Below, in pieces: positions 439 to 50,925 of a stretch of DNA of 64,000 nt. Origin of the DNA: Nageia nagi (Eukaryota > Plantae > Pinophyta); assembly GCA_050084985.1 (NCBI GenBank), contig JBITNC010000002.1:14818001-14882000 (forward strand). The letters are read 5' to 3'. The translations under genes were made by a program, and so were the position numbers. Position 1 is the stretch's first letter; each line of letters starts with the position of its first letter. The notes beneath the pieces were generated by a model. It searched no databases, had not been told where the DNA came from, and saw only the letters and a list, made by a program, of their open reading frames with translations.

Positions 439-2841
439 ATGCACAGTAAAGATCGGGTAGCGTTCTCATACGTTTGCTTCCCTGCTTTGATTCTGACTCT
501 GCTATTGGTTCCTCTAAATTCTAACGTAGACGGTGTTGCTGACACCATCATCGCAGGAGCACATCTCACGGCCTCAGAAACCAGGGTTTCCAACAATGGC
601 ATCTTCAAGCTGGGTTTCTTCAATTTGCAAGATACCAACAAATGGTATGTGGGTATTTGGTATGCTCAAGTCCCACAGCAGACAATCGTATGGATTGCAA
701 ACAGAGACAAACCCTTGCACAACGCCTCTGCCGTCTTTGGTCTCACAGAGGACGGTGGACTTGCGCTCTCTCAAGGGGACTCTGTCATCTGGTCCACAAA
801 TGGGACGAAAGAAGCTTCTTCTGCAGTGATAACAGATACAAGTAATCTGGTTCTGATGAGTGCGGAGAACAAGTCTCAAATTGTTTGGCAAAGTTTTGAC
901 ACTCCGGGAAATGTATGGATGCCCGGGATGAGGATTATGTTTGACCGGATTCTGAGTTCGTGGAAGTCCAGCAGGGATCCGAATCCGGGCCTCTTCAGCC
1001 TCCGCATAGATCCGTCCGGTGAGGATCAGATAGTGCTGATGTGGAACAGCTCCGTCACCTACTGGGAATCCGGAATCTGGAACGGCAAATCGTATACCCT
1101 AGCTCCGCTTACAATACCCAACATTCGGTACAATTTCAGCGTTGTTAGTGACGGTGATTCCAAATATATTCATTTCTCTGTGGATCCTCTTCTCACATAT
1201 CTGTCGCAATTCATCATGATGGTTGCAGTGTCAGGCGAAATCAGAATGTTCTTCTTGCGGGACAACACAACGTGGACCCTTTTCTGGTCGCAACCGGGAA
1301 AACAGTGCGCCGTTTATGCGGGCTGTGGAGCCTATGGACTATGCAATCCACGTAACGTTCAATCCTGCAACTGTCTCGACGGTTTCAAACCCATAGATAA
1401 TGAAGCATGGGAGTCCCAGGAATGGTCAGCCGGATGTAAGCGGATAACTGCACAAGATTGCCAAGACGGTAACCGCAAAGGGTTCCTGCAGCTAACCAGT
1501 GTATCTACTCCACCTGGGGCGATCGCATCCCAAAGGCCGATGACAGCGGAAGAGTGCAAGAAGGTTTGTCTCAGCGATTGTTCCTGCACTGCATACTCTC
1601 ACGGTACTAATATTAATTGTCAACTGTGGTACAATGACCTGTTCAATCTATACGAGGAAACCTCCAACGGTTCGCCCCTATTTGTGAGAGTAGCCGCCTC
1701 TGATCTGCCGAAATCATCTTCCAGAAATCACAAGACATATGTTGTAGAAGCAGCGGTAGGCGTCGTTGTGGGACTGGCCGCGATTTCTGCCGTCGTTTTT
1801 GCAGTTCTCTTACGACGGCGTAGATCATTTACAAAGTCGGCGGATTATGGCGCTTCAGCGGCTCTTACGATTTTCAGCTACAAACAGCTGCAGGTTGCGA
1901 CCCAAAATTTTTCGGAGAGGTTGGGAGGCGGAGCATTCGGGTCTGTGTTCAAGGGCACTCTCCGGGACAAGTCTCTGGTGGCGGTGAAGATATTGGAAGG
2001 GACGACCCATGCTCATCTAGAGAAGCAGTTCCGCACGGAGGTGAGCACTTTGGGGATTATACAGCATGTGAATTTGGTTCGACTGCGGGGATTTTGCTGC
2101 GAGGGCTTAAACAGATTGCTGGTCTACGACTGCATGCCTAATGGTTCCCTCAATACTTTTCTGTTCCACGAATCGAATGTTTTGGACTGGAAGACGCGAT
2201 TTCGAATCGCTTTAGGAGTTGCCCGTGGCATCCTCTATCTGCACGAGGAATGCAGAGATTGCATTATCCACTGTGACATCAAACCGGAGAACATACTGTT
2301 GGACTCCGACTTCTGCCCGAAGGTTGCCGACTTCGGGCTGGCGAAACTGGTGGGAAGAGAGTTCAGTAACGTTTTGACAACCGCGAGAGGGACGAGAGGG
2401 TACCTGGCACCCGAGTGGTTATGCGGGCTGCCCATCACTCCCAAAGCCGATGTTTACAGCTTCGGCATGACTCTGTTTGAAATAATTGCAGGGAGAAGAA
2501 ACATAGATGGGGATGCAGATTCCAGTAAGGTGTTCTTTCCCGCTTGGGCGGTATCTGAGATAAGCAAAGGGAACTTTATGGGTGTGGTTGACAAGAGGAT
2601 TGAGAATGATGCGGAGCGTGAGGAGGTAAGGAGGGCTGCGATAGCGGCAGGGTGGTGCATTCAGGACGAGGAGGACGATAGGCCGTCGATGGGTGAGGTG
2701 GTGCGGATAATGGAAGGCACTGTAGATGTGTCTGCGCCGCCCCTTCCAAGGTCCATTCGGAACATGGAAGAGACAAGCAGCTTCTTTTTCCCTTGGGATA
2801 AAACTGAAACGGATAATCGATCTGACCCCACTCCAAGTTAG
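439..2841 (+). CDS. G-type lectin S-receptor-like serine/threonine kinase (SD-2 type, non-RD), intronless, 800 aa
   Basis: Uninterrupted 800-aa ORF. Contains a signal peptide, B-lectin (FKLGFF...WYVGIWY...VWIANRDKP...WQSFDTP), S-locus glycoprotein region, EGF-like (CAVYAGCGAYGLC), PAN/apple (CKKVCLSDCSCTAY), a transmembrane helix, and a kinase domain with LGGGAFGSVFKG, VAVK, HCDIKPEN, DFG and GYLAPEW. Confidence 0.96.
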   Translation: MHSKDRVAFSYVCFPALILTLLLVPLNSNVDGVADTIIAGAHLTASETRVSNNGIFKLGFFNLQDTNKWYVGIWYAQVPQQTIVWIANRDKPLHNASAVFGLTEDGGLALSQGDSVIWSTNGTKEASSAVITDTSNLVLMSAENKSQIVWQSFDTPGNVWMPGMRIMFDRILSSWKSSRDPNPGLFSLRIDPSGEDQIVLMWNSSVTYWESGIWNGKSYTLAPLTIPNIRYNFSVVSDGDSKYIHFSVDPLLTYLSQFIMMVAVSGEIRMFFLRDNTTWTLFWSQPGKQCAVYAGCGAYGLCNPRNVQSCNCLDGFKPIDNEAWESQEWSAGCKRITAQDCQDGNRKGFLQLTSVSTPPGAIASQRPMTAEECKKVCLSDCSCTAYSHGTNINCQLWYNDLFNLYEETSNGSPLFVRVAASDLPKSSSRNHKTYVVEAAVGVVVGLAAISAVVFAVLLRRRRSFTKSADYGASAALTIFSYKQLQVATQNFSERLGGGAFGSVFKGTLRDKSLVAVKILEGTTHAHLEKQFRTEVSTLGIIQHVNLVRLRGFCCEGLNRLLVYDCMPNGSLNTFLFHESNVLDWKTRFRIALGVARGILYLHEECRDCIIHCDIKPENILLDSDFCPKVADFGLAKLVGREFSNVLTTARGTRGYLAPEWLCGLPITPKADVYSFGMTLFEIIAGRRNIDGDADSSKVFFPAWAVSEISKGNFMGVVDKRIENDAEREEVRRAAIAAGWCIQDEEDDRPSMGEVVRIMEGTVDVSAPPLPRSIRNMEETSSFFFPWDKTETDNRSDPTPS

Positions 2842-3073
2842 CCCAGAGATCAAATTTCACAAGCAGGACAGTTTTCAAAGACTTTTTCATATTCTTTAAT
2901 AATGCAAAATTAGTTTAGTTTTATGATTAATTGTTTTTTTTTATTGGACAAGTTTTAGTTTTGTTTTAGGATTTTAGATATTTTCATTTGTTAGAGGTGG
3001 GGGAGAGTTTTCACTTATCCTTATTTTTTCAACCCTTCTAGCTTGCTTTCATAGATTAAATTATTTATAAATA

Positions 3074-3378
3074 TTAGCTTAGATATCTTAATATATATTT
3101 GCAAAACGGTGAGACATATTAATTTTGAGGTACATATATCTTTCATAAAACATCATAACGAGTTAAAATAGATACTTCAAGATTGATACTTCTCGGTACT
3201 TTGTAGATTTTAATGTTATTAAGGTAGTTTAGAATATAACCTTTCAAAGGATAAGATTTTAAGCCCTATATGACAAGTGAAAGCTCTTTGACGATATTGA
3301 TGCATCAATTTCGATCCTCCAATGTAAACAAAAGAAAGTGTTATTTGAACCTTGAATAAATTCTTTTGTTGTATGTAA
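3074..3378 (-). mobile_element. Old non-autonomous mini Helitron-like element of the same family as 3381-11287
   Basis: 3074-3228 aligns by eye with the terminal foldback 3381-3537 (ttagcttagatat vs ctagctttgatat; aaaacggtgagacatatt vs aaaacgtcgagagatatc; ttgatacttctcg vs atgatatctctcg). 3352-3378 matches the large element's 5' end (11261-11287) at 25 of 27 nt. Minus-strand ends are TT (likely decayed TC)...CTAA|T. Confidence 0.7.
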
Positions 3379-3379
3379 T

Positions 3380-3537
3380 ACTAGCTTTGATATAACCCCT
3401 TATATATCAAAAAACGTCGAGAGATATCATTTAGAGGCGCGTATCTTGGATATAGCAATACCAAGAAATGAGATAGGCACCTCGAAATGATATCTCTCGA
3501 CGTTTTTTGATATATAAGGGGTTATATCAAAGCTAGT
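3380..3537. repeat. Long inverted repeat (53-bp perfect arms) at the 3' terminus of the Helitron-like element
   Basis: 3380-3432 is the exact reverse complement of 3485-3537. The stem extends imperfectly inward (agaggcgcgtatct / agataggcacctcg), and a small cttgg...ccaag pairing is possible in the loop. Confidence 0.97.
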
Positions 3538-3718
3538 GGCATCCATCATCGCATGATTATTGAATTATAATATTAAGAGATACAATACAAATGCAAATAT
3601 TATTTTAAAAATAATGTTTAACAAATGAATATGACTCATACATAAGGAGTCATTGACAAATAATATTGAGTAAGATTTAAAAAAAATCAAAATTAATCAT
3701 AGTAATATTGATTTTTGG

Positions 3719-6539
3719 CTACTCCAAAGATTTGAGTCTTTCTTCTTCAGCTTTCCTTTGCACAACTCCTTTTCCTGATTTCAATTTTGCATAATGATCA
3801 TATGGAAACGGTGCTAAAATTCTAAGTCCATCCAATGCTTTGATGCGAGATATAGCAACAAATGTTAAACCTTGCCTTCCCCTTTCTCCAATATCTATTG
3901 TTGCTTTATTAAGTGTCAAACCTTGTGATTTATGTATTGTTAAGCCCCAAGCCAATCGTAATGGAAGTTGACGTGTTCGACCTCTTTCTATAGGTATAAT
4001 TGGAATAGCTTTATCTTCAAGTGAACATCCTGTAAAATGATCAAATTCTACCATAACATATGTTGGTAGATCAGGTGGAGAATTCCCTGGTTTGTATACA
4101 ATTTTTCTAACATATCCCAAAGCACCATTAACAAGTCCAGCTTCTATCCATAAGTTAGATGTTAGCATAACTCTTGCATTATTTGCAATTAATAACTCAA
4201 TTTCAAGCTCTTCACTATCACCCCCTCCTTGTTTTGTGCTCCCTGATTTTGTTGCAATACTACGTGCTACTGGAAAATTTAACTTGAGTAGTTGTAACCT
4301 ATTATGATAAAAAATATTTCATTAGTTAGCAATATATTAATATTATATCAAAATTTAGCAAGTAATTCAAAATTCAAAAAAATGGATTTATTTAAAATAA
4401 ATTCATACCTGTTATGATTATGCACATTTTCATTAGTTGCAAATAGATGAATATTCTGATCAAAATCATCCCTTGTAGCCGGATCTAGATTTGAATTTGT
4501 TCTTGTCATCAATAATTTCCAATCATCTTTAGTTGGATTTGCATCCCTTAAATTAATTAAAAGTTGACGAAACTTTTTTTGATCTTCACTCTCTCCTTCT
4601 TGTCGAAATACTCTATCTAATGTTATAACAGTTGTGAACTTTTGCCATAATAATCTTGCATGTCTATCAGTGGCATATGGTGGTCTATCCATAACAGGTG
4701 GTAACTGTCCTAAATCACCTACTAAAATGATTGACCTACCTCCAAAACATATATTTGATTTTTCTGGAAAACCTTCTCGAAGGCGATAATCTATGTGTTC
4801 CAACATTTTCTGCCCTATGAAGCTCATTTCATCAATCAATATATATTTTACATGTTTCATATCTTCTTGAAAAGTATTTAATCTTGATCCCTCTAATTTA
4901 TCAAAGTTTGTGATAGGAATTCGAAGTGATCCATGGATTGTAGTGGCACCAATGTTGAATGCAGCAACTCCAGTAGGTGCAAGTAAAAGAAGGGGAGAAT
5001 GTTTTATAGATGGTAAGTCTTGAAATGCTTGACGAAGTGCTCCAATTAGATACAATTTTCCTGTTCCTGCTGTTCCTTGAATTATCATATATAAAGGGTC
5101 TATATGTTGTTCCTGATTATAATGTGTCATTATTATATCATATGCTTGTTTTTGTTTCATGCTAAGGCTCTCATATAGGTAATTTAAAGGGGCATCATCA
5201 TCAATAAATGCACCATTTTGTTTCATTCTGGTTATCCAATTTATTGCTTTTTTTTTGTATTCTTCTGATATATATTCATTATCCCATTGTGCTTGTCTAT
5301 CAACATCCCTTCTACCAAGCATATCTATTTCTGTCCTTGTAAAGTGATTTCCACGATGTAATTGGGCTATAATTTCCCATTCATTCTCTATAGTGTTCTG
5401 ATGAACTGTTCGTTCATCATCATCTTCTGAATCATTGTGATATTCTTGTTCTGTATTTTGGATATTATTCATTCTCTCAATATGCCAAGGCCTATAGTTG
5501 AATGCCTCCCAATTTGTTATGATTGTGCTATCATCAACCCCGATATCTCTTTCTATATTTCTAAATGGCTTGTAAAGTAACAACTCTGACCAACAAAATT
5601 CAATAAATTTTTCCGATTCTTTTTCAGGAATGGTCGTAAAACATGGCCATGCCCTCACAATAGCTGCATTTTTTCTAGTGCTCCATTTCAACTCACTTCT
5701 TCGTCTTGGATTATATGTCCATGATCTAGCTGCATCAATAAGTGAGATAGTTTCCATCATACATGGTCATTGAATATATCCATCAATTAAAGACTTACCA
5801 TTTCTTTCTGTTTCTTCTTCATCAATATTTTCCACCTCCTTGAAAACTTTTCGTCCAACATTTAGAGAAATAAAAACTCTACTACATTCAACCAATGGAA
5901 GCTCTAATAACATATGACATGTTTCTTGTGCTCCTATATCTCTCTCAATAATTGTTTCCGTTAGAAGACACCTATATGCTCTTGTTGCTAAATCATCATC
6001 ATTTTCTAAATTTGTAATTCGCATCAACATGTCTTGATAGGTTTCTGAACTTTTCTCAGCCTTAGTAGCATATTTAGCAATATAATTGATAACAGCATGC
6101 TTTGATAGAACAGGTTGCCAATCTACATTTGCTCTCCATAACTGTAATATATGTTTATTATGTGTATTGACTCGATCATCATTTCTTATTGGTTCATACT
6201 TTTTATCTTTGGTTTCTGGATCTTCATATAATTTGGATCCATCTAAAGATAAAGGCCATGGTGCATTATACCTATAAAAAGAAAAATTAGTTTAACATAA
6301 AGGATGATGAATTTAAAATTATAAATATATATAAGTAGTCATAAGTATTTACCTACAAACCATCTTTCCTCTTTTCTTGCGTAAGCATGCACCTTCTCTA
6401 CATACAGTGTGACGCTCAACACAATTGAGAATCTCTTCATAATCAAGATCTAAGTCTACTTGATCAAGTTGACGTGTATTCCTCAAACATGGGTGTTGAT
6501 TAATATTTTGAAGAAGCTGTGAAATATATACAATGGTTA

Positions 6540-6575
<36 letters not shown>

Positions 6576-8916
6576 TTAAAACATAAAATTAAAAAAATAG
6601 ATACTTTATGCATACCTGTATATTTCGTTGATGTGGGTCTCCTCGAGGATTCCATGCATGCACAATATTATCAAAATATGTTTGTGCTTTTTTCACTTGT
6701 TCTTCACTTGTCCAATCTAAATTATCCATGTTTGGAGCTCCCTCTATCCATAGAAAACCATGCACATGTGGAGATCCCCTATGTTGCCATTCATATCTAC
6801 ACCAATATTCTTTGACTTTCATTCGTTTTTGCAATACCTCTTTATGAAAAATTGTATTTCGTAGATGCATGTAATGAGCTACAATATGTGGGTAATCAAT
6901 AATATTTTATCTTCGCCATTTTTGTGCTTCTCTTGAATCAGATGGTGATGTTCCTGGCATCAACGCATGAAGGTCAGGCCAATACATATCAGCTGCACTT
7001 AAAGTGAAAAAAATGGTTGGAGATCCAATTTGATGTAATAAATCACTTAATTCAGCACGACTCTTCATCCAATAAAATCTTGTGCCTCTTAATGTAGATC
7101 TAAAACGCATTAAACAATCTGCTAAATGTGATTGGGGAATATTATCCATGTGTTCTCGCAATTCATGGATTGTAGTTGGCAAATCTTGAAGACTCTTCTT
7201 CACAAACACTGCTGAAGAATTCTGAGCACGATGTCTCATTATCATGTTCATTATGAAATACCTAAATCTTGGATGCTTTCCAAAATGTTGATCTCTATAT
7301 CGTAATAAATGTTTTGCAAATTCATGAAGATAAACTTTTCTATTTCTTGGTTCTATCCAATCACAGTTTCCATTTGGGAATAATGTTGGAAATGCCATAT
7401 CAAGCAACCCTTCAGTAGTATACTCATTTATAGGAGATGCTCCAATTCTAGGCCAATCAATGAGTGTTATTAGTTCTACATTAGGGTTGTTGACCCATGC
7501 ACGAATTAATTCCATCTCCCTTGGTGCATTGGGTGGTTTACAGGCCATAGATGTTGTGTGATTAATGACGTTTCCTTCATCCATCTCAATTGTTGGACCC
7601 ATTACTACATATTCATTCATATCAGAATTAAACTCCATATGAACAGAGTTTAGAATGTTAAATATGTTTATATCTGTATTAGCTGGGAGATCTCTTAGAA
7701 CATCTTCATCAATTTGCACATCCTTATAAAACTTATCATTTTCTATCTTATACTTCAAAGCTTTAAAGACCCTCTCTTTATTTACTGTGAAATTATAATT
7801 TGTACCATGTTGATCTCTTCTTCGAACAATAATGACTGGTAATTCATTTATAGGATGAGGTAGTACCTTCGCAATTTGTTTCACTTCTTGTGGAAAGCTA
7901 ATTGTATGCCCTTTGTACTTATATTGGCCTCCGGTAGCATGTGTTACTTGTAATATTGGATTGACACGTGCTATCAACATTTCTTCAATTTGTGTTAAGT
8001 TTGATAATTCTGATGGTTGTGATCCAGGATCCATGTGATTTGAGGATGAAAATCGATGAGGAAGAATTTTCTCTTGTCTACATCTATTACATGTCAGACC
8101 TTCAGTAGTAGATAACACCTTCATTCCAGGATAAGATTCTTGGCAAATGTAACACATCGATGGTGATGCAAGTTTTTGTAGTTGAATTCGAAATAAGGTT
8201 TGCATTTCTTTGAAATCTATTTGAATATTTGTATTAGTATGTCCATATGTTCTATTATGATTTGTTTGATTTGCATTCATTTGGAAACCTTCTACATTTC
8301 CTTCTCTTAAACGATGTGTTGGAGGTGTCTCTCCCATTTCAGTTGCTTCATATTGTGTTTGTCTCACCACAATTATATTTCTAGCATTTCTTTCAAAAAA
8401 AGAGGATGCATCGGAAACACTTACGTTATCATGAACATTATTACGATGTATTCTTTCCTCTCTTTGACTATCTTCCTCAGCTCGTCTAGCGCGCTGAAGT
8501 TGGCGGTCATTCGCACGTTTTCTCCTAATCTCCTCAAGTTGAAATTGTGTTTGATTTTCTTGGTTTGTTGTTTGTTGTTCCATATATCTTTGGCGTGCTT
8601 CTTCTCTTTGATCTTCTGATATTTTTGCATGTGTTTCTCTCATTTGTTGAGTGTGTATTGCTCTTTGTTCTTCATTTTCTTCATTGGACATATTAGCACG
8701 AGTTTGTCTCTTTCGTTCAGAATCGATTGCTCTTTGTCGTTGTTTTTATTCATTTGTCATTTCTGCCCTACATTTTGCTCGATTTTCTCTTTGTCTTTGT
8801 CTTTCTCTCTCTTTATCACTTTCAGTCATTCTTTCACATCGTCATCTATTATAATCTCTGTGATATTGTCTATGTTGTTCTAATCTCTGTTGTTCTCTTT
8901 GCTCTTCAGAATTCAT
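3719..8916 (-). pseudogene. RepHel transposase (HUH Y2 endonuclease + PIF1-family SF1B helicase), 4 exons, ~1635 codons, 4 premature stops
   Basis: Exons 8916-6616, 6516-6353, 6271-4409 and 4298-3719 joined at GT-AG introns give one frame of 4908 nt. Motifs: CxxC...CxxC, IEEMLIAR..GGQYKYKGHTISFPQ (DUF6570-like), AFPTLFP, FFTLSAAD, HUH (EWQHRGSPHVHG), Y2 (YIAKYATK), Walker A (GTAGTGK), APTGVAA, IDEMS, GDLGQLPPV and LAWGLTIHKSQGLTL. In-frame stops at 8842-8844, 8746-8748, 6907-6909 and 5767-5769. Confidence 0.9.
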
Positions 8917-10174
8917 TATCTTTGTCACAAATTTACTACAAAAACATAAGAGAATACATCATTATATTTATTTAAATAACAACTTAAAGATATTTACATA
9001 ATTTTCAAGCATTAATATACTTAAATAATTATAATTTTCTAATAACTATTGTTGAACACATCCTAAGATTATTATTAAGATTCATGATATCATCGTCTAT
9101 TATTCAATAAAATGTAATTACATAAAATATCTAAGGAAACCAAAATTTTGATATGCTTTCGCAGAGGAGAATGCCCAGCGATGACTTGTGCCATTTTCTG
9201 GTGGATCTCTCTGCTTGCTCTATGTAGGAAAGTAAATAAAAATTATGTAGATGTATTTCAAGCATAGTGTTGCAATTATCGGATGAATTTGCAGAATGGA
9301 GGAGCTGATTGTTGGTAATAAAATTGCAAGATCACTCTGAATCAAAACTTTTACTTCGCAGGCTTGGCATACATATCCCCCACATTTCCTTCATTACATT
9401 GTCATGGCCACAGCTTTTGGGTATTGGTTTTGGCTTAAGTTGTAGTAATATTTATTGGCTTGATTGTTTATTAATGTAATTGGTGTGTGAAATGCAAAGG
9501 GTTTTTTTGTCATTCAGATTTATATACCCGAACAAGAAACAAATTTATGAGTAAAAACACAAAAAATTATTTGCAGATTGGAGAATGAATTTTCTATACT
9601 CAAAAATACAACATAATCCAATAAATCTATCCATGTATCGATATTATAAAAACTAATCAATATGTGCAAACGAACTTAATAGACCCCAGTTTAGAAGAAG
9701 TACCCAGCTAAACAATCATTAACAACAATTATATTGCTAATTGGAACAGTCCAGAGCACAGTCCTCGCAGTAATTTTTGAGCCAAATGCCTCTGCATGGA
9801 AGCTTAATTGGGACTTCGAGCTTCTCAGTATTGTTTATACGATTCGTTTTGTTGTTATTGAATTTGTAATTTGTTATTTGTTCTAAGTAAATGTAAATTA
9901 GAGGATGTTCATGTTGATTCAGGGAGTATTGTGCTTGGCATTTGCATTCTTTGTGCAAGCGTACTGTATCAGTAAAAAAGGATCTGTGTTCGGGTTGGTA
10001 GATATTCAGTTTCGTAGACTGTGGATCGTAGTTGTTGCGCAAGTCACAGACTAAGCTCTTCACTCTCTGGGGCTAAATTACCTTTCTTATTGACATATCT
10101 GTATCAATTAATTACGAGGGAGCATTTAGAGCTGTTCAGATTCATTAAACCCTAAATTTTTGCACGTCGTAACC

Positions 10175-10930
10175 ATGCAGAAATACCAACCAGATTCAAA
10201 CATCAGTTCTCATAAAACTTTTGAGCTTCAATGGGATTTGTTCCAGAAGCTAATGGGAGACGTCTATGTCATGATCGATGAAATGCAACCTAATTTTGAT
10301 GCAGAAGAATTAATCGAACTTTATAATATCATGTCTTACATTTTTAAACAAACTATTTGTTACAGGTATATCGCAGAGCAAATTTACAAAAAATACAAAC
10401 GTTGTTGTCATTGGGATTATTTAGGACTGGTGGTTTTCCCAGCCTTGGCGAACAAGAGGGGTCGTTATTTTCTGGAGCAATTCAAAAAGAGATGGGAAAG
10501 TTACAGAATAATAGTACAATTCCTTTCAATGACTTTCAATTTTTTGGATGATTACTATGAGATAGGGAGATTTTCAGGAAACTTTATTAGATTTGGCGAA
10601 TCATACTTTCGAGTTATGGTATATGATCAATTCAAAAATAAGGTGAGAGATGCGATGCTTGCAATGATTACTGAAGTTAGAGATGCGACATAATTTTTTG
10701 GGAATTTGGTACAAAGGTTTGTGGAGTTTTATCATCAAATAGGGCCGGAATGTTACAAGGATGATTTTGAATCACCCATGTTAGAGGCCAGTGTTGATTA
10801 CTATGCTATAAAGGTTGGATCATGGCATAAGAAGGTTTACTCTTGTTCAGAATTGATGATAAAGATTGAGGAAACTTTAAAATATAATAAAGAAATAAGA
10901 AATATTACAGTAAAAATATATTTACAATAG
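10175..10930 (+). pseudogene. Intronless cullin-1-like N-terminal-domain gene inside the Helitron-like element (251 codons, one internal TAA)
   Basis: ORFs 10160-10693 and 10706-10930 share a frame and are separated by one TAA (10691-10693). The translation resembles the plant CUL1 N-terminus (QIYKKYK...LVVFPALANKRGRYFLEQFKKRWESYRIIVQFLSMTFNFLDDYY...FRVMVYDQFKNKVRDAMLAMI...YKDDFESPMLEASVDYY...SCSELMIKIEETLK...YLQ). No cullin-homology or neddylation domain follows. Confidence 0.8.
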
Positions 10931-13900
10931 CAGATAATTAACTTACAATAAAATTAAAGTTCTCTTCTGTTTTTACAATCTTTTGTTTCAACTTTGCTTG
11001 TTCGAATTCACTGCATTTCTCGATTGATTTGGGAATGAATTTTTATGATGTTTGATATTCTTCCTTCCATTTATATAATAATTTTTGAAAAGATGTGTCT
11101 TTTAATATTTCAGTCGGCTATATAATTTTAATTTTAAAAAAATTATTTTCCTGCCAATTGTTTAACGGACGGACTCACATGCGACATTTTGCTCCCCCAC
11201 TCCACCCCCCATGCTGCAGCTGTAGAAATGCCTCTCGGTGTAATTATTGAATGGAAGAATTTGAATAAATTCTTTTGTTGTTTGTGATATTATCAAATGG
11301 GAGAATTCTAGTAGAAATGGATATCTCATCTCTTTAGTGATAATTGTTTAGAAATTTTTATATTTATAAATTTAATTATACTGTATTCATTTTTAGAAAG
11401 GTACATTATAAAATATAAATTTTTTATTTTAAACATGAACAAATAATATCATTAACAATTTAAGTGAAAATATAGATCAATTTTATGTAAGTTTTCTTCA
11501 TCGAATACAAAATAAGATCATCTTCTTCATTGTATTTCACATAAATTAATAAAATTTAGGATACTAAGTTTAATAACTTATCAATTAAATTGATAATATT
11601 ACAATTATTATTAACAACCAACTAATATCATGTTGGATAAATACAACTTTTATTAAACAAGAGCTATCACAACCACATTATAATCAACATACACCTTTAC
11701 AATACTCCTCCATGTCAATAAAACACCCCTACTTAACCTGATGTTAGTTGTCCAAATTGAGGGATCTATTTGGAATGTGTTGATTTCTATTAACTCCTAT
11801 AAGAGATAAGATATTAAAGGCAATACCTTCTTGAATCTATGGAATCCACTATATGATAGGGGACTTTATAGCATATCAATTTACCTTTGTATAGAACTCA
11901 ATGATGATAAACTACTTCATTATTTTCTCTAAGAATACACAAGAATGAGTAAATCTTATAATGACTTCACTAATGGATGATATTTTCATGTACCCTCTTC
12001 AATTTCCAATTTTTGTAAGGGTAGGGAAGATAATCCTACAACCATTGGATTAGAGGTCATGAACACCATTTCATTAAGATTCTAGCCTTTCCAATTTTTC
12101 TTCCTTCCTAAAGGATTATAAATATAGAAATAAAATAGTATAGTGCTAATTCATTGTGAAAATCAAAATTGATAATGAATAAAATTCAAAATATACAAAT
12201 ATATAATGTATGTATAGGTTTAAATATAGAGATGATGTGCATAAAATTGATAGCTTGGAGGTAATAATATAGGACATATAAAATGAAAGTGATTAAAGAG
12301 GTTTAGATGTTTATCCTAAATAATAGTAAGAGTCAAAGAAAATCTTGATGATGATCATATATCCTCTCTTTAATGAAATTAATTAATTACCAAAGGATAT
12401 AAATAAGCCATAAAATAATGATTTTGAAGCAGTAATACTAACTATGAAGTGTCATTCTCACTTTTATGTTTATAGGATTTTGAAGATATCTTTTTAAGGT
12501 GTTAGGGGTCTAAAAATGGTGTACGACTAAAATACTTATGTTTTAAGAGCAAGGTACAATAATATTTGCATTATAGGACTAGGGATGTAGAATATTTAGG
12601 TTTTGATCTTGGAGGGATTTTGAAGATGCCAAAGCCCTTTAGAGATATGTGAAGGGGGTTTTAGTATTTTTAGGCCTTCATATATGATATTTGCATCAAA
12701 AATCAAGGGAAAAAAAAAAAACTTATTGATTCATCATGCATAAGATGATAAGAAATATCTTATGATTATAATACCATAAAATATATAAGTATGCCTTCAA
12801 GAGTTGTATCTTATTCCTGAATTGGGGGAGGAAGGGTATTTATATGCTTTTTCATTCAAATTTGATATGATCTTGATATTACACTTTTCTTAAATAAATA
12901 TGCTACACTATTGAACATTGCATAAAAATGATCTAAGGATGCAGAGAATGATGATACTTTGATTTATCTTACCCTTATAATAATACTATAAAATAGATGT
13001 TAAATGTTAAATATGAAATAATTGAACATGCCAAGATGTGATTGGAGACCTATCCTTAGGTTGAGAAGGATATATGAAAGTTTGAATGAGCTAATTCTTT
13101 TATTAGTTAACTATTTTTCTTTTCATTTCTTATCATCATTTTAGTTGAAGCAAATAATTCAATGAAAAATGAATGAGCTTTGCAAAATAAAGTAAAATTT
13201 GGAAGAGTTTAATTACCTATAATATTATGGTAGATTTGAAAATCCTTTATATAAATTGATGATATGTAAAGTTCAGTAGCCTATGTTTATCTACTACTCA
13301 TCATATACAAATTATTCACATTTGTACTTCAAGTGCTTGCAAAATAAAAATTAAGAAATTACTCAATAATTCAAAGTTTCAAATTTAATGAGTTTAAGAG
13401 AGATAATCAATCACCAGAAATTGAGATTACCATATACCTTGGAGAAACTAAATATGGGCATAAAAACCCAACAAAAACTCTAATATATGATGAAGATGTG
13501 AATAAAAAAGCTTCCTCCAAAATGCTCTTTGTTATATTATTAATAGGAACAAACTTAAGGCCTCCAAACTCCAATGGTAGTATCTTCTTGATGCTCTCAA
13601 CACTCAAGTAACAAGCTCACAATCTCTCAACAAGAGTTCTCATGCCCAACTAAATCATAGAATTTTACAATTTTCTTATGCATACATTAGCATAACACTA
13701 ATCTTCAAGAGTATACAAATTTACCTATGCAATAATTTTTACAAGCTCGCATAAACTCTCAAATCTCTTTATCTGAATTCTATCTTCTTGGAATTACACT
13801 TCCTTTTTCATAAATACTTCTTCTTTTCTAATCTCTCTTAAATCTCCTTTTATAACTTCAAAGAGCATAAAATTACAATAAAAATAGTTACACCACATTA

Positions 13901-38289: not shown

Positions 38290-41200
38290 TAATATTTCCT
38301 TTTGGCACAACATTTCCCCCAAGGCATATAATGTAGCTGAGATATACAAATACGTAGGTTTTGAAAAGTCCATAGGCACTAGGATAGGATGATTGAGAAA
38401 ATAGCATTTGATATCCTCAAAAGGTTTTTGGCATTTGTCATCCCATACAAATTTAACATCTTTTTTCAATAATTATGTAAAAGGTCTACACTAATATCTA
38501 AGTTGGGAAATGAACCTTCTTATCGAATTAATCTTTCCTTGAAGACTCCTTAATTACTTTAGATTATTTTAGGGAGGCATGCTAATGATGACTTTCACTT
38601 TTTTAGGATCTACTTCAATTCCTCTTTTAGATGCTGTGAAACTAAGTAACTTTCCAGAAGCAACACCAAAAGCACATTTTTGATGTTTTAAGTCTAAGTT
38701 TGTACCTTTTCAAAATTTGAAAGACTTCCTCAAGCATCTCTAAATGGTCTGGACCTTGTTTTGATTTCACCAATATATCATCAACATATACCTCAACTAA
38801 TTTATGGATGTGTTCATGAAACATTGACACCATAGCCCTTTGGTAAGCAACACCAACATTTTTTAGTCCAAAGGGCATAACCTTCCAACAAAAATTTCCC
38901 CATGGAGTGGTAAAAGAAGTCTTATGTTGGTTAGTTAGACTGATTAATATTTGATTATAACTAGAAAAACCATCCATAAAAGATAATGCATCATGACCAG
39001 CTATGATATCCACAATCATATCAATATTGGGCAATTGAAAAACATATCTAGGATAAGCATTATTAATATCTTGAAAGTTAGTGCAAATCCTTATTTTTCC
39101 AATTGACTTTGTGATAGGGATAATGTTGGCCATCCAATTAGAATAATCAATTGGTCTAATAAATCCAGCATTCAAATACTTCTCTATTTCTTTCTTGACT
39201 AACAAAGCTTTTGAAGGATGTATTTTTCTTGGCTTTTGCTTGATTTTCTTAATCCCCTTTTTAATTGGTAAATTATGCATAACAAATGAAGGATCTAAAA
39301 TAGGCATATCATTATAATACCAAGAAAAAAAATTATGATGTTCAATGAATTTATTTTGGTACCTTTCTTGTTGTGGTGTAGGGAGGGATACTCCAATTTG
39401 AACCAATATTTTCTCATCAGTGGTCCCAATATTGACATTCACCAATTCTTTAGCTGGGAAGGTAAGCTCATCTTTGTTTTACAATAGATAAGGTAAACCT
39501 TTAATCCTTGTATATCATTTGTAACCTTATTATCTAACTAAACATTAAACCCATCATTGAAATTCACCTCTTAACCAAAATATGCATATTCATTGAGAAC
39601 ATAACTAACTTGCCTCTTTTCATTAGAACTAGGTAATTCTAAATGTGCCCTCAAGTATTCTAAAATATCATCATCCGTATTAAAGCAATCAAATTCTAAA
39701 GGTATAGTATCATCATTCCATAGCTCCCTATCAATATCATCAGATAATTCAATCAAATCGCATTTCTTAACAAACTTAATAAGCCCCAATGCTTATTTAG
39801 TATTTATATCACTACCCAATCTATTTTTAGTCAATTACACTTTTGAATTATAAGGAAATGAAGGCATCCCTTAATCAGACTTTCTTAATCCTCCCCCTTT
39901 GTACTTATAATTTTCAATCATATATTTATGAAAAAAAGGAGATGGAAAGAGTTTACCTATTTTAGTAGTCATTCAAACTTTCATTGATTTGTAAGGATTG
40001 GGTGATAGATACGTGCTAGAGCAAGATCCTTCCCCATCTCTACTATTTTCACATTATTGACAGTATTATGGTAGGAATGCAGGCTGCTAAAGGACCTCCA
40101 TAGATAAAAAATTTGGTTGTCCAAATCTTTAACGAATGTAAATAAGTCCACATTCCCAATTTTGTATGTACCCATTTTAGTTTTTGTAATCTAATTTTAT
40201 TTTTCTATATTTTTTCTTGGTGCACTTTGTTCCAAGGGATCAATCTCATATCTTGGATAAGTCATTGTAAACTCCTCAAAATCTATTGCATTATAGAAAG
40301 CATAAGGCCCTGGATCACCAAGCATTGTATGGACCTCATCCTAAAATTTAAAATTTAATTTTCCATGTACTATATATGGGATTGCATCCATGTCATGAAG
40401 CCAAGGTCTTCCCTATAACAAATTATATGACAACTTAGAATCAACAACCTAAAATTTAGCTATAATTATCCTTACTCCTGTTGTTACCATAATTGTGGCT
40501 ATCCCAACCATTTTTTAGAGGAGCTATCATATGCCCTAATCATGAATGTAGCTTCTTATAATGGAGAGATTTTTATACCTTTTTCTTTGAGTTGAATCAA
40601 AAACTTATGGGAGCATACGTTGATAGCTGATCCATTATCTACCAATGTTCTTTTTATTTTTCATCCATCAATCATAGGTGTAATATATGAGGCTAAACAC
40701 TCATCAAGCAACTCCTTATTAAGCTTTTCATATTTGTAAAAAGAGATAGTATCACATTCCTTAATAGCTCTAAGCTTTTCATATAACATAACAATAGACA
40801 TATTTGTAGGGACTACCTCCTTTTTGAACAAAGCATATAAGATCTCCCTATGTATTTCAGATGTGGATATAAGATTATATAAACTAATCTTAGTAGGAGT
40901 TATTTTTAATTACTCAATCATATTATATATCTTTGGATCATGTGGGATACTTATTCTATAGTGGCTAAATTAGGAGTATGCCTTGGATGTCCTCTTCTTA
41001 ACCCAACACAAACTTCTTTATCCACAGAAATTGTATTCCCCATATTTCCCTGAGTTGCATCTATTTGATCAATTTGATACTTTCCTCCAAAAATAAGATC
41101 CAATATATAATGTTTTGCAAAACTTTGTAGCATGACCCTTCCTTTGATGAAATGTGCAATAAGCATCTGATTTTCCCATAGGAACATTATCATCTTGAGC

Positions 41201-45790: not shown

Positions 45791-48700
45791 TGTTGACTGA
45801 CCTTGCACGATTTTGACCTAGTGCATTTCTCACCTACGTGACTCTGACTTGCGCGCGATTCTGACCAACGCGTTTCTCACCTACGCGATTCCATCTTGCA
45901 CGATTCTAACTTACGCATTTGTCACCTACGCGTTTCTGACCTTAAAACGTGACCGTGTTTCATGGGAGGCTAGGCATTTTGGCAGTACGCCCAGAATAGT
46001 CCAGTTTGTACTTATTTTAGCTCTATAGCTTAGTTTGGCGATCTATTCTGATCTATTCCAGTTCGTAGGAGTTTTGTTTGACTGTCTAGAATAGGTTTAA
46101 ACTACATTTAGAGCATATTTGATGGTTTTGGATATGAGTATAATAAATGTTGAGCCTATCTACTCAACTATCATTTGTCTATATTGAGCTCAGTCCAAGC
46201 TCTATAAAAGCTTTGTAAATTCATGAATCAAATAGAGTGTGATTATTCTCACATTGTGGTATCAGAGCCTCTTGGTCTTTTGGGTTAGAAGAGATTACAT
46301 TGCAAGCATTCTTGCAAGTGTATAGTCCAGTCCTGTCATTTTTTGAAAAATGGCCAACAACAACAATTCACTCCCATTACCAGAATTCCATGGAGATGAC
46401 TATGAGTACTGGTCTATCAAGATGAAGACCTTGCTCATAGGAAAAGGATTATGGGACATTGTTGAGGATGGATACACTGATCCAACCGACTGGTCTACTT
46501 TGGGAGATCAAACCAAGAAAGACATGAAGCAAAATCAAAGGAATAATTCCTTTGCTCTCTACCATCTTCAAGCTTCAATGGGGAATGCAATTTTCCCTAG
46601 GATTGCATCATGCACATCAGCAAAGAGTGCTTGGGAAGCACTGAAGCAAGGTTTCCAAGGGAGTGCTCAAATCAAGCAAGTGAGACTCCAAACCTTGAAG
46701 AGGGATTTTGAAAACATCAAAATGAGGGATGATGAGTTTGTTGGTGACTATTGTGTGAGGGTTAAATCTTGTGTTGACAAGATGAAAACCCTTGGAGAAA
46801 CAATCACCAATGAAGTAGTGGTGAAGAAGGTGCTTAGATCACTTCTCCCCAAGTGGAACCATGTAGCAATTATCATAGAGGAAAGCAAAGACTTGGCTGC
46901 TCTTCCCTATGATACTCTCATTGGTTCCTTGATGAGTCATGAAGAGAGGCTCAAAGACCTCACTCCTTCAGCTGATCAAGCTGATGACAAAGCCTTTGCA
47001 AGCAAGGAAGGTGAATCCAATTCTTCAAGAGGAGGAAGAAGAGAAAGAGGGAAAGCCAAAAGAGGGAGATTCCAAGGAAGAGGAAGAGGTAGAGGAAGGA
47101 CAAGTGGTGACAAGAGTGACAAACAATGTTACTACTGTAACAAGTTTGGTCATTTTGAGAGTGAGTGTAGATTGAAAGCCTCACAAGAAGGAAATAGTGG
47201 AGGTGCCCACTATGGAGAGGAAGAGAATTCCTCTCACTTGTTCATGTCCATGGAAAAGTAAGATGAAAAGGTAAAAGAAGAGACTTGGTTGCTAGATACG
47301 GGAGCATCAAACCATATGACCGGCAAGGGGGAGTTATTTTCTTCTTTAAACAACTCATACAAGTCTAAGATCAAACTTGGATATGAAAATCCATTGCAAG
47401 TTGAAGGCATGGGAGCCATGGAGGTAAGCACCATTGAAGGTCCCAAGAAGGTAAAAGACATCTACTATACTCCAAATTTAAAACACAATTTGTTGAGTGT
47501 AGGCCAAATAATGGAGAGAAATTATAAGCATGTATTTGAGAATGCAAAATGTAAGATTTATGATAAAAATCATGGTAATAGGCTAGTCACTTCAATCCCT
47601 ATGACCAAAAATCGCTTATTTCCTCTCCAATTTGGTAAAAATAATGGTGCTTCACTTGCAAATGTAGCCATTGACAACAAGAGTTGGCTTTGGCATCTAA
47701 GATATGGTCATCTAAATTTTGTAAATTTGAGATTACTAACATCTCAAACTATGGTCTATGGGCTGCCCAAAGTTGAAGATAATAAAAATGAAGTGTGCCA
47801 AGGATGTGCTTTTGGAAAGCACTCAAGAAGCAAATTCCCAAGAGGAGAAGCATGGAGGGCCTCTAAACCCCTACAATTGGTGCATAGTGATCTTTGTTGA
47901 CCTATGCAAACTCTAAATATGGGTAAAAATTCTTACTTACTCACTTTTATTGATGATTTCTCTAGATATTGTTGGATATATTTCTTAAAATCAAAAGATG
48001 AAGTCTTCAAGTACTTTCAAGATTTTAAGAACCATGTAGAAAATCAAAGTGAATGTAAAGTAAAATGCCTAAGAAGTGATAATGGAGGAGACTATTGCTC
48101 TAATGAATTCTTGAAGTTTTGCAAGGATTGTGGAATAAAAAGGCAATTCACATCACCTTATACTCCACAACAAAATGGTGTTTCCGAAAGGAAAAATTGC
48201 ACTATTGTAGAAATGGCAAGGTGCATGCTACAAACAAAAGAATTGAGCAATCAATATTGGGCTGAAGCATCAAGAACAGTAGTGTATATTCTCAATAGGA
48301 GTCCAACCTCAAGCTTGGAAGGTGTCACTCCTTATGAAGCATGGTTTTTGAAAAAACCCAATGTAAGGCATTTTAGAATTTTTGGATGTTTAGCTTATGT
48401 ACATGTACCAAATGCGCTTAGAAAAAAACTTGATGCAAAAAGTGAGTCATGTATTTTCATAGGCTATAGTGAGTCTTCAAAGGCTTATAAATTGTATAAT
48501 CCAAAAACTAGAAAGATTATTGTCTCAAGAGATGTAATTTTTGATGAAGGGGGAGCATGGAGTCATAAAAAACTCTATGTAAATAATCCTCCTCAAGATG
48601 TAAATGCCTCTAATATGCAGCCAAATTAGTCCAATATCAGCCCTCCTCCAAGTCCTCCAAAGGATTCAAGCACTTCTTCAAGCACACCATCTCCAATGGA

Positions 48701-50925
48701 TGAAGACTCTCCAAATCTTGTGAGCAAAGGAAAAAGAATTCTTGCCAATCATCCACCACAACAAATGTTAGACAAAAATTTCTCAAGAAGATACACTAGA
48801 AGTCAAGCAAATGAACTTCAAGATGTTGTTAGAAGACTTGAGAATTTAAAAATGTATGGTGATGAAGATGATCAAGCCCCTAAAGGTGATGTGATCAATT
48901 ATGCTTTGATAACTAGTGTAGAGGTTGAACCTTCTAGTTATGAACAAGCATGTACTAATGATGCTTGGGTGAAGGCCATAGAAGATGAAATCTCTTCCAT
49001 AAAAGGGAATGATACTTGGGAGCTTGTGGAGCCTCCCAAAGGCAAGAAAATTGTTGGTTGTAAATGGGTCTACAAAACCAAATACAATAGCAATGGCACC
49101 ATAGAGAGGCACAAAGCAAGGCTTGTGGCCAAAGGCTTTCTCCAACGATATGGCATTGATTATGAAGAGACCTTTGCACCAGTAGCAAGGCAAGAAACCA
49201 TTAGATTGGTTCTTTCACTAGCTGCCCAAAAAGGTTGGAAAGTAATGCACATGGATGTAAAAAGTGCATTCTTGAATGGGTATTTGGATGAAGAGGTTTT
49301 TGTTGAACAACCTCAAGGCTTTGTAATCCAAGGAAAGGAACATTTTGTATATAAGTTAAAGAAGGCCTTGTATGGCCTCAAACAAGCTCCAAGAGCTTGG
49401 TACTCAAGGATTGATGCGTTCTTCCATCAATATGGATTCATTAGGAGCAAAAGTGAACCTACTCTCTACACCATGAAGCAAGGTAATGATCTCCTACTTG
49501 TTTGCTTGTATGTTGATGATCTTATCTTTATGGGGAGTAACTTCAGCATGAATGATAACTTTAAGAGTTCCATGATGAAAGAATTTGAAATGAAGGACCT
49601 TGGACTCATGCAATACTTCCTAGGCATGGAAGTACTCCAAAAAGATGATGAAATCTTTATTTGCCAATCCAAATATGCCCAAGACATGTTGAAAAAATTT
49701 GGTATGATTGATTGCAAATTAGTACCAACACCAATGGCTCATGGAGAGCTACTTTACAGAGATGATGGCACACCAAAGGCTGATGGGACCAATTTCAGAA
49801 GCATTGTGGGAAGCTTGATGTTTCTCACCAACATAAGACCGGATATTGCACATGTAGTCTCACTTGTTTCAAGGTTCATGAGTGATCCTTCAGAAGCTCA
49901 TTTAAAAGCCACCAAGAGAATTCTTAGATATGTAAAAGGTACTACCAAATTTGAAATCCATTACTCAAAAATGGATATTATAAAGCTTGAAGGGTTTAGT
50001 GATAGTGATTGGGGTAGTAACATTGATGATAGGAAGTCTACATCAAGGAATTATTTCACTCTTGGGTCTGGTTTTGTAACATGGAGCTCTAAAAAACAAA
50101 CTACAGTGGCTTTATCCTCTACTGAAGCTGAATACATAGCACTCACAAGTGCTAGTACTCAAGCCTTGTGGCTTAGAAACGTTCTAAAAAAACTTGGAGA
50201 AAAGCAAATTGGTCCTACTACATTGTATTGTGATAACCAAAGTGCCATTCAATTGGCACTTAATCCAGTCCACCATAGTAGATCCAAGCACTTTGACATG
50301 AAGTACCACTTCATCAGAGATATGGTGGAGAAAGGAGTAATTGAGCTCAATTATTGCAACACTTTGGACAACATTGCTAATTCTTTCACCAAAGGAGTTG
50401 CTAAAGCTCAGTTTATGCTGCTGAGGAGCTTTCTAGTAAGTCCCCTCAGCATTAAGGGGGAGAATGTTGACTGACCTTGCATGATTTTGACCTGGCGCAT
50501 TTCTCACCTATGCGACTCTGACTTGCGCACGATTCTGACCAATGCGTTTCTCACCTACGCAATTCCATCTTGCATGTTTCCCTTGCATGATTCTAACCTA
50601 TGCATTTCTGACCTTAAAACGTGATCGCATTTCGTGGGAGACTAGGCATTTTGGCAGTACACCCAGAATAGTCCATTTTGTACTTATTTTAGCTCTATAG
50701 CTTAGTTTGGCGATCTGTTTTGATCTGTTCCAGTTTGTAGGAGTTCTGTTTGACTGTCTAGAATAGGTTTAAACTACATTTAGAGCATATTTGATGGTTT
50801 TGGATATGAGTATAATAAATGTTGAGCCTATCTACTCAACTATCATTTGTCTATATTGAGCTCAGTCCAAGCTCTATAAAAGCTTTGTAAATTCATGAAT
50901 CAAATAGAGTGTGATTATTCTCACA
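45791..50925 (+). mobile_element. Full-length Ty1/copia LTR retrotransposon
   Basis: LTRs 45791-46253 and 50465-50925 (TG...CA), TSD CTATT, PBS TGGTATCAGAGCC (tRNA-iMet) at 46257-46269, and PPT AAGGGGGAGAA at 50454-50464. Confidence 0.97.
46350..50474 (+). pseudogene. copia gag-pol (gag, zinc knuckle, protease, integrase, RT, RNase H) with three in-frame stops
   Basis: Four ORFs in one frame with CYYCNKFGHFESEC, LDTGAS, HLRYGH...C..C, DDFSR...SDNGG...SERKN, YVDDL and DSDWG...TEAEY. Stops at 47259-47261, 47898-47900 and 48627-48629. Confidence 0.95.

Follow-up and report, generated by a model that had tools for sequence, protein, structure and literature searches.

Helitron-like elements are split into two groups, HLE1 and HLE2, and the type of protein that they encode is thought to go with the type of end that they carry. 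The hairpin of canonical plant Helitrons lies 10–12 nt before the CTRR end. Here we analyze an HLE2-type element in 64,000 nucleotides of the conifer Nageia nagi (GenBank assembly GCA_050084985.1, contig JBITNC010000002.1, positions 14,818,001–14,882,000; hereafter the window, numbered from its first letter). DUF6570 is found specifically in the HLE2 clade and has been proposed as the marker by which to tell HLE2 from HLE1 (HELIANO, PMC11417382). The nearest description to the present element is the proto-Helentron of Thomas and Pritham (2015), the one claimed exception to the pairing of protein and end type; it has been known only in Phytophthora, and none turned up in 404 other genomes (PMC11417382).

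Positions 3381 to about 11248 (possibly 11287) of the window, on the minus strand, are probably an old, inactivated Helitron-like element of autonomous type belonging to HLE2 (Helitron2/Helentron), in a conifer host. What is new against the literature searched is a base-exact CTAG/T terminus inside a conserved, loop-flipping foldback of 157 nt, with no terminal inverted repeats (TIRs), in a conifer. A reading made earlier from the sequence alone had proposed a hybrid architecture and a possibly undescribed lineage of plant rolling-circle transposons. The combination of an HLE2 protein with a CTAG 3' end and a giant foldback stands; the canonical TC 5' end is not supported by other copies. The claim of an undescribed lineage is weakened, as the presence of HLE2 in land plants (six of eight classes) is already published (HELIANO 2024, PMC11417382). 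For the end architecture, we found no description of a CTAG-foldback end in conifers in the literature searched.

The element shares with proto-Helentron an HLE2-type RepHel gene with DUF6570, a 3' CTAG and the lack of an apurinic/apyrimidinic (AP) endonuclease. It differs in host (a conifer instead of an oomycete) and in the 157-nt foldback that contains the terminus. The 12-nt TIRs and 5' stem-loop that a re-description by HELIANO gives for proto-Helentron (PMC11417382) were not found here. Helitron2/Helentron elements (FoHeli1/2, and HelenSM92 of Sphagnum) have the same DUF6570-Rep-PIF1 order, a 3' stem-loop and a target T after the element. In contrast to these, the present element has no asymmetric TIRs that we could find, ends in CTAG and not in a T-rich end, and has no endonuclease domain. 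Canonical plant Helitrons (HLE1) likewise have a CTRR-type end followed by T, a foreign gene fragment and a terminal block common to numerous non-autonomous copies. The Rep here, however, has DUF6570, the hairpin has about ten times the length and takes in the CTAG, and the TC start is putative. Plant HLE2 elements with an RPA gene (HELIANO subgroup a) also carry cargo upstream of RepHel, with RPA70 where this element has a cullin-like fragment.

Coding type and state of the RepHel gene

RepHel homology searches were made exon by exon. The open reading frame (ORF) 8691–6907 matches the Pfam family DUF6570 (PF20209; residues 210–332, E-value 2.8e-28, 99.4 bits against a cut-off of 24.3) and, downstream of it, Helitron_like_N (PF14214; E-value 6.6e-18), the remainder of which lies in 6870–6589. 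PIF1 (PF05970) is matched in 5760–4348 (E-value 3.1e-28). The catalytic motifs follow in order on the minus strand: FFTLSAAD of the Rep domain at 7011–6988, the HUH motif SPHVHGF at 6774–6754, the Y2 motif YIAKYATK with its two tyrosines at 6084–6061, and the helicase Walker A at 5076–5053, with Walker B also present. HUH and two-tyrosine Rep motifs thus stand before a PIF1-type helicase in one gene. DUF6570 lies N-terminal to Rep, unlike an HLE1-type Rep, which is without DUF6570.

The closest relatives of the Rep exon are uncharacterised Cryptomeria japonica proteins (65–79% identity), followed by Ginkgo models and unnamed metagenome proteins, with a fungal DUF6570 protein last. In an atlas search, the nearest clusters consist of DUF6570 proteins from rotifers, oomycetes and arthropods. 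By its DUF6570 marker the RepHel protein is classed as HLE2 (Helentron/Helitron2), in agreement with the sequence-only reading. Within HLE2, the coding type is assigned as Helitron2-like because it combines the DUF6570 marker and DUF6570 atlas neighbours with the absence of an endonuclease domain (no Pfam match to Exo_endo_phos in any RepHel piece). A PDB search returned no Helitron transposase. The Y2 region (5770–6291, minus strand) has a weak match below cut-off to RepSA, the pSAM2 replication initiator (E-value 2e-4), which hints at a prokaryotic rolling-circle kinship of the Rep domain.

The gene had been described as a four-exon gene of about 1635 codons. The four exons are confirmed: all introns are GT..AG (Table 1), and introns 1 and 2 coincide exactly with gaps in tblastn alignments to Cryptomeria japonica RefSeq models and Ginkgo proteins. 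The length is not, and the gene is not intact. The model from ATG 8691 has 1561 codons, and the start at ATG 8919 that is needed for about 1635 brings in two extra in-frame stops. From ATG 8691 onward, a TAA inside the Rep domain and a TGA between Rep and helicase interrupt the frame at positions where homologues have an amino acid. We ruled out that these stops are parts of small introns, as the homologous proteins align straight across them. The RepHel gene is broken by nonsense codons and this copy of the element is dead.

Two side observations concern the composition of the element. Differences of this copy from others in 6200–11321 are mostly C>T and G>A (144 and 149 in run X6 of those introduced below, compared with 67 T>C and 59 A>G), and the element body has a CpG observed/expected ratio of 0.48; methylated repeats usually decay in this way. 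RepHel intron 1 holds a (TA)15 microsatellite at 6545–6575, and similar TA tracts occur at about 43.2 kb and 60.0 kb of the window.

The CTAG terminus and its foldback

On the minus strand the element ends CTAG/T at 3384–3381/3380: the last element base is 3381 and the next base is T. The element thus ends in ...CAAAGCTAG, followed by the target T. The 158-bp terminal hairpin of the sequence-only reading is borne out as a palindrome at 3380–3537, whose arms of 67 nt show 96% complementarity across a spacer of 24 nt. Folded as single-stranded DNA, the foldback reaches -67.9 kcal/mol, compared to -13.4 ± 3.0 for shuffled sequences (z -18).

An independent and more decayed relative, the 7550-bp Joint Genome Institute metagenome contig L001, carries the same end. 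L001 is 85% identical to window 8316–3624. Its similarity extends across the entire palindrome and breaks off directly behind ...TATATCAAAGCTAG and a T, at the same point as in the window, and the flanks beyond are unrelated. On this sequence comparison, the CTAG 3' end followed by T is confirmed to the base by a second copy. Both copies therefore have the canonical CTRR terminus followed by T. The boundaries had been expected to be shared by other copies; this holds for the CTAG end.

The L001 foldback is also stable (-54.3 kcal/mol, z -12.5). Among 57 consensus pairs of the two foldbacks, two differ in both bases (U-A to C-G, A-U to U-A), three have one-sided changes to wobble pairs and none is broken. 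One base pair is deleted on both arms. Judged from these paired differences, the 157-nt foldback is conserved through compensatory changes. The 3' stem-loop of HLE2 elements is therefore present, but it is 157 nt long and contains the terminus. A short hairpin of 16–20 nt placed 10–12 nt before the 3' end was not found, the foldback being the only structure at this end.

The arms of the two foldbacks (window 3381–3537 and L001 6108–6257) are in register, and the asymmetric centre, a 36-nt core, is inverted between them. Aligned with the flip, 136 of 158 columns match and the core is identical; without it, 128 of 166 columns match and the core needs gaps. Only the centre is inverted, because diagnostic arm mismatches beside the core keep their sides. 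In these two copies, the inverted centre looks like a flip/flop state.

The 5' side and the start of the element

The 5' side was examined by copy number. Public runs of only about 200 million letters still contain about half of the words of the stretch (run search), so part of it must be highly repeated. We aligned contigs of four public runs (X1, X2, X6 and X10) to positions 6200–12100 at a likeness of at least 80% (Table 1). Positions 6200–9144 are multi-copy, with contigs ending or diverging at 9031 and 9144, and we read the RepHel body up to 9144 as the family core. By contig depth in the four runs, the most abundant part of the element is its outermost ~350 nt on the 5' side. Contigs diverge within this block at 10890–10900, 11039, 11046 and 11161, and the block becomes less conserved towards the interior, as the left ends of Helitrons do. 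The block 10891–11248 is probably a left terminal sequence shared with many, presumably non-autonomous, relatives. We infer from position, orientation and the depth gradient that this block and the RepHel body belong together.

The outer loose ends of contigs fall at 11246 (seven contigs, X10) and 11248 (eight contigs, X6). The consensus of the flanks at 11246–11248 agrees only to about 0.5, which implies many different flanks. We think it slightly more likely than not that the 5' end lies at 11244–11248. The minus strand at this limit reads AATAA-TTACACCGAGAGG, and a TT lies a few bases inside it at 11243–11242; proto-Helentron starts with a 5' TT. The 5'-most 160 nt fold no better than shuffles, with no stable structure. 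Helentron-type TIRs of 12–16 nt were sought between 3381–3700 and the regions at 11287, 11246, 10890 and 9144, and the matches were no better than shuffles. No similarity to the 5' block was found in the upstream part of L001 (1–700), in the L001 flank or in L003.

The sequence-only reading had started the element at A/TC. The letters are there on the minus strand (11288/11287–11286), but other copies do not support them as the 5' end: at least 15 contigs of the abundant 5' block leave at 11246–11248, 40 nt inside the TC. An end at 11287 is possible but in our view unlikely. The one observation in its favour is a 32-nt direct repeat, D2, not mentioned in the sequence-only reading, which straddles both proposed element ends and matches at 29 of 32 positions, with an exact 21-nt core for which 0.02 occurrences are expected by chance. 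Both copies of D2 are preceded by TA and open with T(C/T)ACA. They would be explained if the complete element ran from 11287 to 3381 (A/TC...CTAG/T) and 3380–3352 were the 5' tip of an older, decayed member arranged head to tail with it at a distance of 2 bp. Fusarium offers a precedent, one HLE2 element having inserted 2 bp from another (PMC5148889). This arrangement is nevertheless rather improbable given the diverse flanks of the contigs that leave early. No cluster of loose ends near 11287 is among those listed, and the supposed neighbour shares neither the 5' block nor the foldback with the family. Apart from D2, no element-like sequence was found in 2900–3380.

D2 could instead be the remnant of a target duplication of about 45 nt around an element with its 5' end at about 11244–11248, with copies at 11292–11247 and 3383–3338 blurred by three substitutions and an indel. 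The 3' copy of D2 abuts the CTAG, a gapped alignment takes the 5' copy to 11238, across the 11246–11248 limit, and a D2 divergence of 3/32 is not in conflict with that of the foldback arms (3/67). We consider this distinctly unlikely: extension past 32 nt adds one alignment-score point and is not significant, and Helitron-like elements are known to insert without duplicating their target (PMC5148889).

A much shorter element was also considered, in which RepHel begins at about 9144 (A/TTTTGG...), 9145–10890 is host DNA that includes a cullin pseudogene, and 10890–11248 is an abundant repeat of unrelated origin. The depth of the family stops at 9144 with contigs ending exactly there, the minus-strand context is an A followed by TT, and L001 shares nothing upstream of about 8907. 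However, X1 and X2 have the same continuation at 9144, as at a subfamily branch point and not as with diverse flanks, and most X6 and X10 copies diverge already before 8958. Positions 9155–10730 are assembled in low-coverage runs where the true single-copy flank is not, and so must themselves be present in a few copies. In the outer block, the gradient of depth also speaks for a terminus at the outer edge. A start at 9144 is therefore quite improbable.

Several points weigh against the element as we delimit and classify it, namely an HLE2 element from 3381 to about 11248. None of the contigs was seen to run from the 5' block straight into the RepHel body, and the model by itself does not account for the 32-nt D2. 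A single further copy (L001) was available for the 3' end. The assignment to HLE2 comes from a domain marker and nearest neighbours. A Herpes_Helicase match lies below threshold (16 bits against a Pfam cut-off of 27), and HELIANO ties this domain mostly to HLE1 (PMC11417382).

An active family with this structure would move as Helitrons do. Rep would nick the 5' end, the helicase would peel off the strand in the 5' to 3' direction, the foldback, which has CTAG at its foot, would act as the signal to stop and cleave, and the strand would be ligated ahead of a T. As for the abundant 5' block, it would be the left terminal sequence common to many non-autonomous relatives. The cullin-like piece would be a passenger acquired by, or inserted into, one small subfamily between the 5' block and the RepHel body. 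The present copy would be mobile only if an intact relative supplied the enzyme.

A bolder reading would make conifer HLE2 a distinct lineage defined by a loop-flipping 3' foldback of about 150 nt that contains the CTAG cleavage site and whose pairing is maintained by compensatory change. By analogy with parvoviral flip/flop, the hairpin might then serve in termination or in priming the second strand, and insertion may duplicate tens of target bases. We think this very unlikely. To our knowledge, a target duplication of tens of bases is known for no Helitron-like element.

Table 1. Features of the element in window coordinates, with contig depth in four public runs
Feature	Position	Strand	Basis
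3' terminal foldback (right terminal sequence), CTAG at both extremities	3381–3537 (157 nt)	minus	palindrome, folding, L001
RepHel pseudogene (DUF6570, HUH-Y2 Rep, PIF1 helicase)	3719–8691	minus	Pfam, splice sites, tblastn of Cryptomeria and Ginkgo homologues
RepHel exons	8691–6616, 6516–6353, 6271–4409, 4298–3719	minus	splice sites read from sequence
RepHel introns	6615–6517, 6352–6272, 4408–4299	minus	splice sites read from sequence
In-frame TAA inside Rep domain (nonsense)	6909–6907	minus	K in homologues P0009, P0020 and P0003; contiguous alignment
In-frame TGA between Rep and helicase (nonsense)	5769–5767	minus	R in P0030 and P0021, M in P0009; contiguous alignment
Leader upstream of ATG 8691, subfamily-shared; possible N-terminal extension from ATG 8919	8692–9144	minus	multi-copy depth to 9144; L001 similarity reaches only ~8907
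Low-copy internal insert or captured segment, 1.75 kb	9145–10890		low depth in four runs
Cullin-1-like N-terminal fragment, intronless	10175–10930	plus (divergent from RepHel)	Pfam, translation
Very high-copy block, probable 5' terminal region (left terminal sequence)	10891–11248	minus	depth rises outward, loose ends
Stretch between reads-defined limit and proposed TC; subfamily-specific 5' tip or flank	11249–11287 (39 nt)	minus	D2 (sole support as element)
D2, 5'-side copy	11261–11292		29/32 identical to 3352–3383
D2, 3'-side copy, abutting CTAG end	3352–3383		29/32 identical to 11261–11292
Depth, RepHel body	6200–8957		X1 53–132, X2 55–255, X6 1004–7948, X10 128–1262
Depth	9155–10730		X1 0.2–5.6, X2 0.6–7.4, X6 0–14.7, X10 0–3.5
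Depth	10731–10927		X1 110, X2 71, X6 513, X10 20
Depth	10928–11124		X1 513, X2 1400, X6 5130, X10 406
Depth	11125–11321		X1 735, X2 448, X6 15388, X10 1831
Depth	beyond 11322		X1 0, X2 0–0.3, X6 5–19, X10 0.7–1.8

Cargo, surroundings and meaning

The 1.75-kb segment between the RepHel body and the 5' block is low-copy in all four runs, and its contigs (9155–10730) are 93–98% identical. We read it as cargo of a few copies that is absent from most copies of the family. Its part at 9145–10160 contains no Pfam families. Beyond this lie two plus-strand ORFs (10160–10930) that match Pfam Cullin at positions 14–142 and 152–216 of 620 (E-values 3.2e-10 and 9e-06), so the divergent cullin fragment of the sequence-only reading is real. 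It is not a cullin gene of the element's own: only the N-terminal third is present, the C-terminal cullin-homology and neddylation region is missing, and the frame has a stop at 10691–10693. The homology ends where the high-copy 5' block begins.

Against 1.84 billion representative sequences, the best match of the fragment has an E-value of 6.6e-19 at 29% identity; none falls below 1e-30 and none exceeds about 37% identity over long stretches. The named top matches are truncated or divergent angiosperm 'cullin-1-like' proteins. A length-limited protein search and PDB gave no match. A recent capture of host CUL1 is ruled out by the identity of 37% or less to anything. The cullin piece is a decayed passenger and not a family-wide accessory gene, because it lies in a low-copy insert, is truncated, contains a stop and has 29–37% identity to known proteins.

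Other scans of the stretch gave little. No further fragments of the family were found elsewhere in the window. The Rep, the 5' block and the foldback core have no match in scans of viral contigs, and the 5' block has none in a scan of a genome contigs collection. The Rfam and tandem-repeat scans were empty. Four air-metagenome runs contain 35–49% of the words of window 3000–11700 (run search), which would fit wind-borne conifer pollen DNA.

An intact, intronless ORF for an 800-aa G-type lectin S-receptor-like kinase (439–2841, plus strand; B_lectin, S_locus_glycop, PAN_2 and Pkinase domains) has its end 540 nt from the element's 3' terminus. Further away are a Ty1/copia-type coding region with gag, integrase and RVT_2, split over four ORFs (46350–50474, plus strand), and a separate RVT_1 reverse-transcriptase fragment (38642–39445, minus strand).

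The single copy is in itself ordinary, a dead element with a passenger fragment beside an intact receptor-kinase ORF. Structure-based Helitron finders seek short hairpins or TIRs, and could miss or mis-bound elements of this kind in giant conifer genomes. A conifer family with an HLE2 protein, a base-exact CTAG end and no TIRs would be a second, abundant exception after proto-Helentron. If so, end architecture and enzyme clade would not be tightly coupled.

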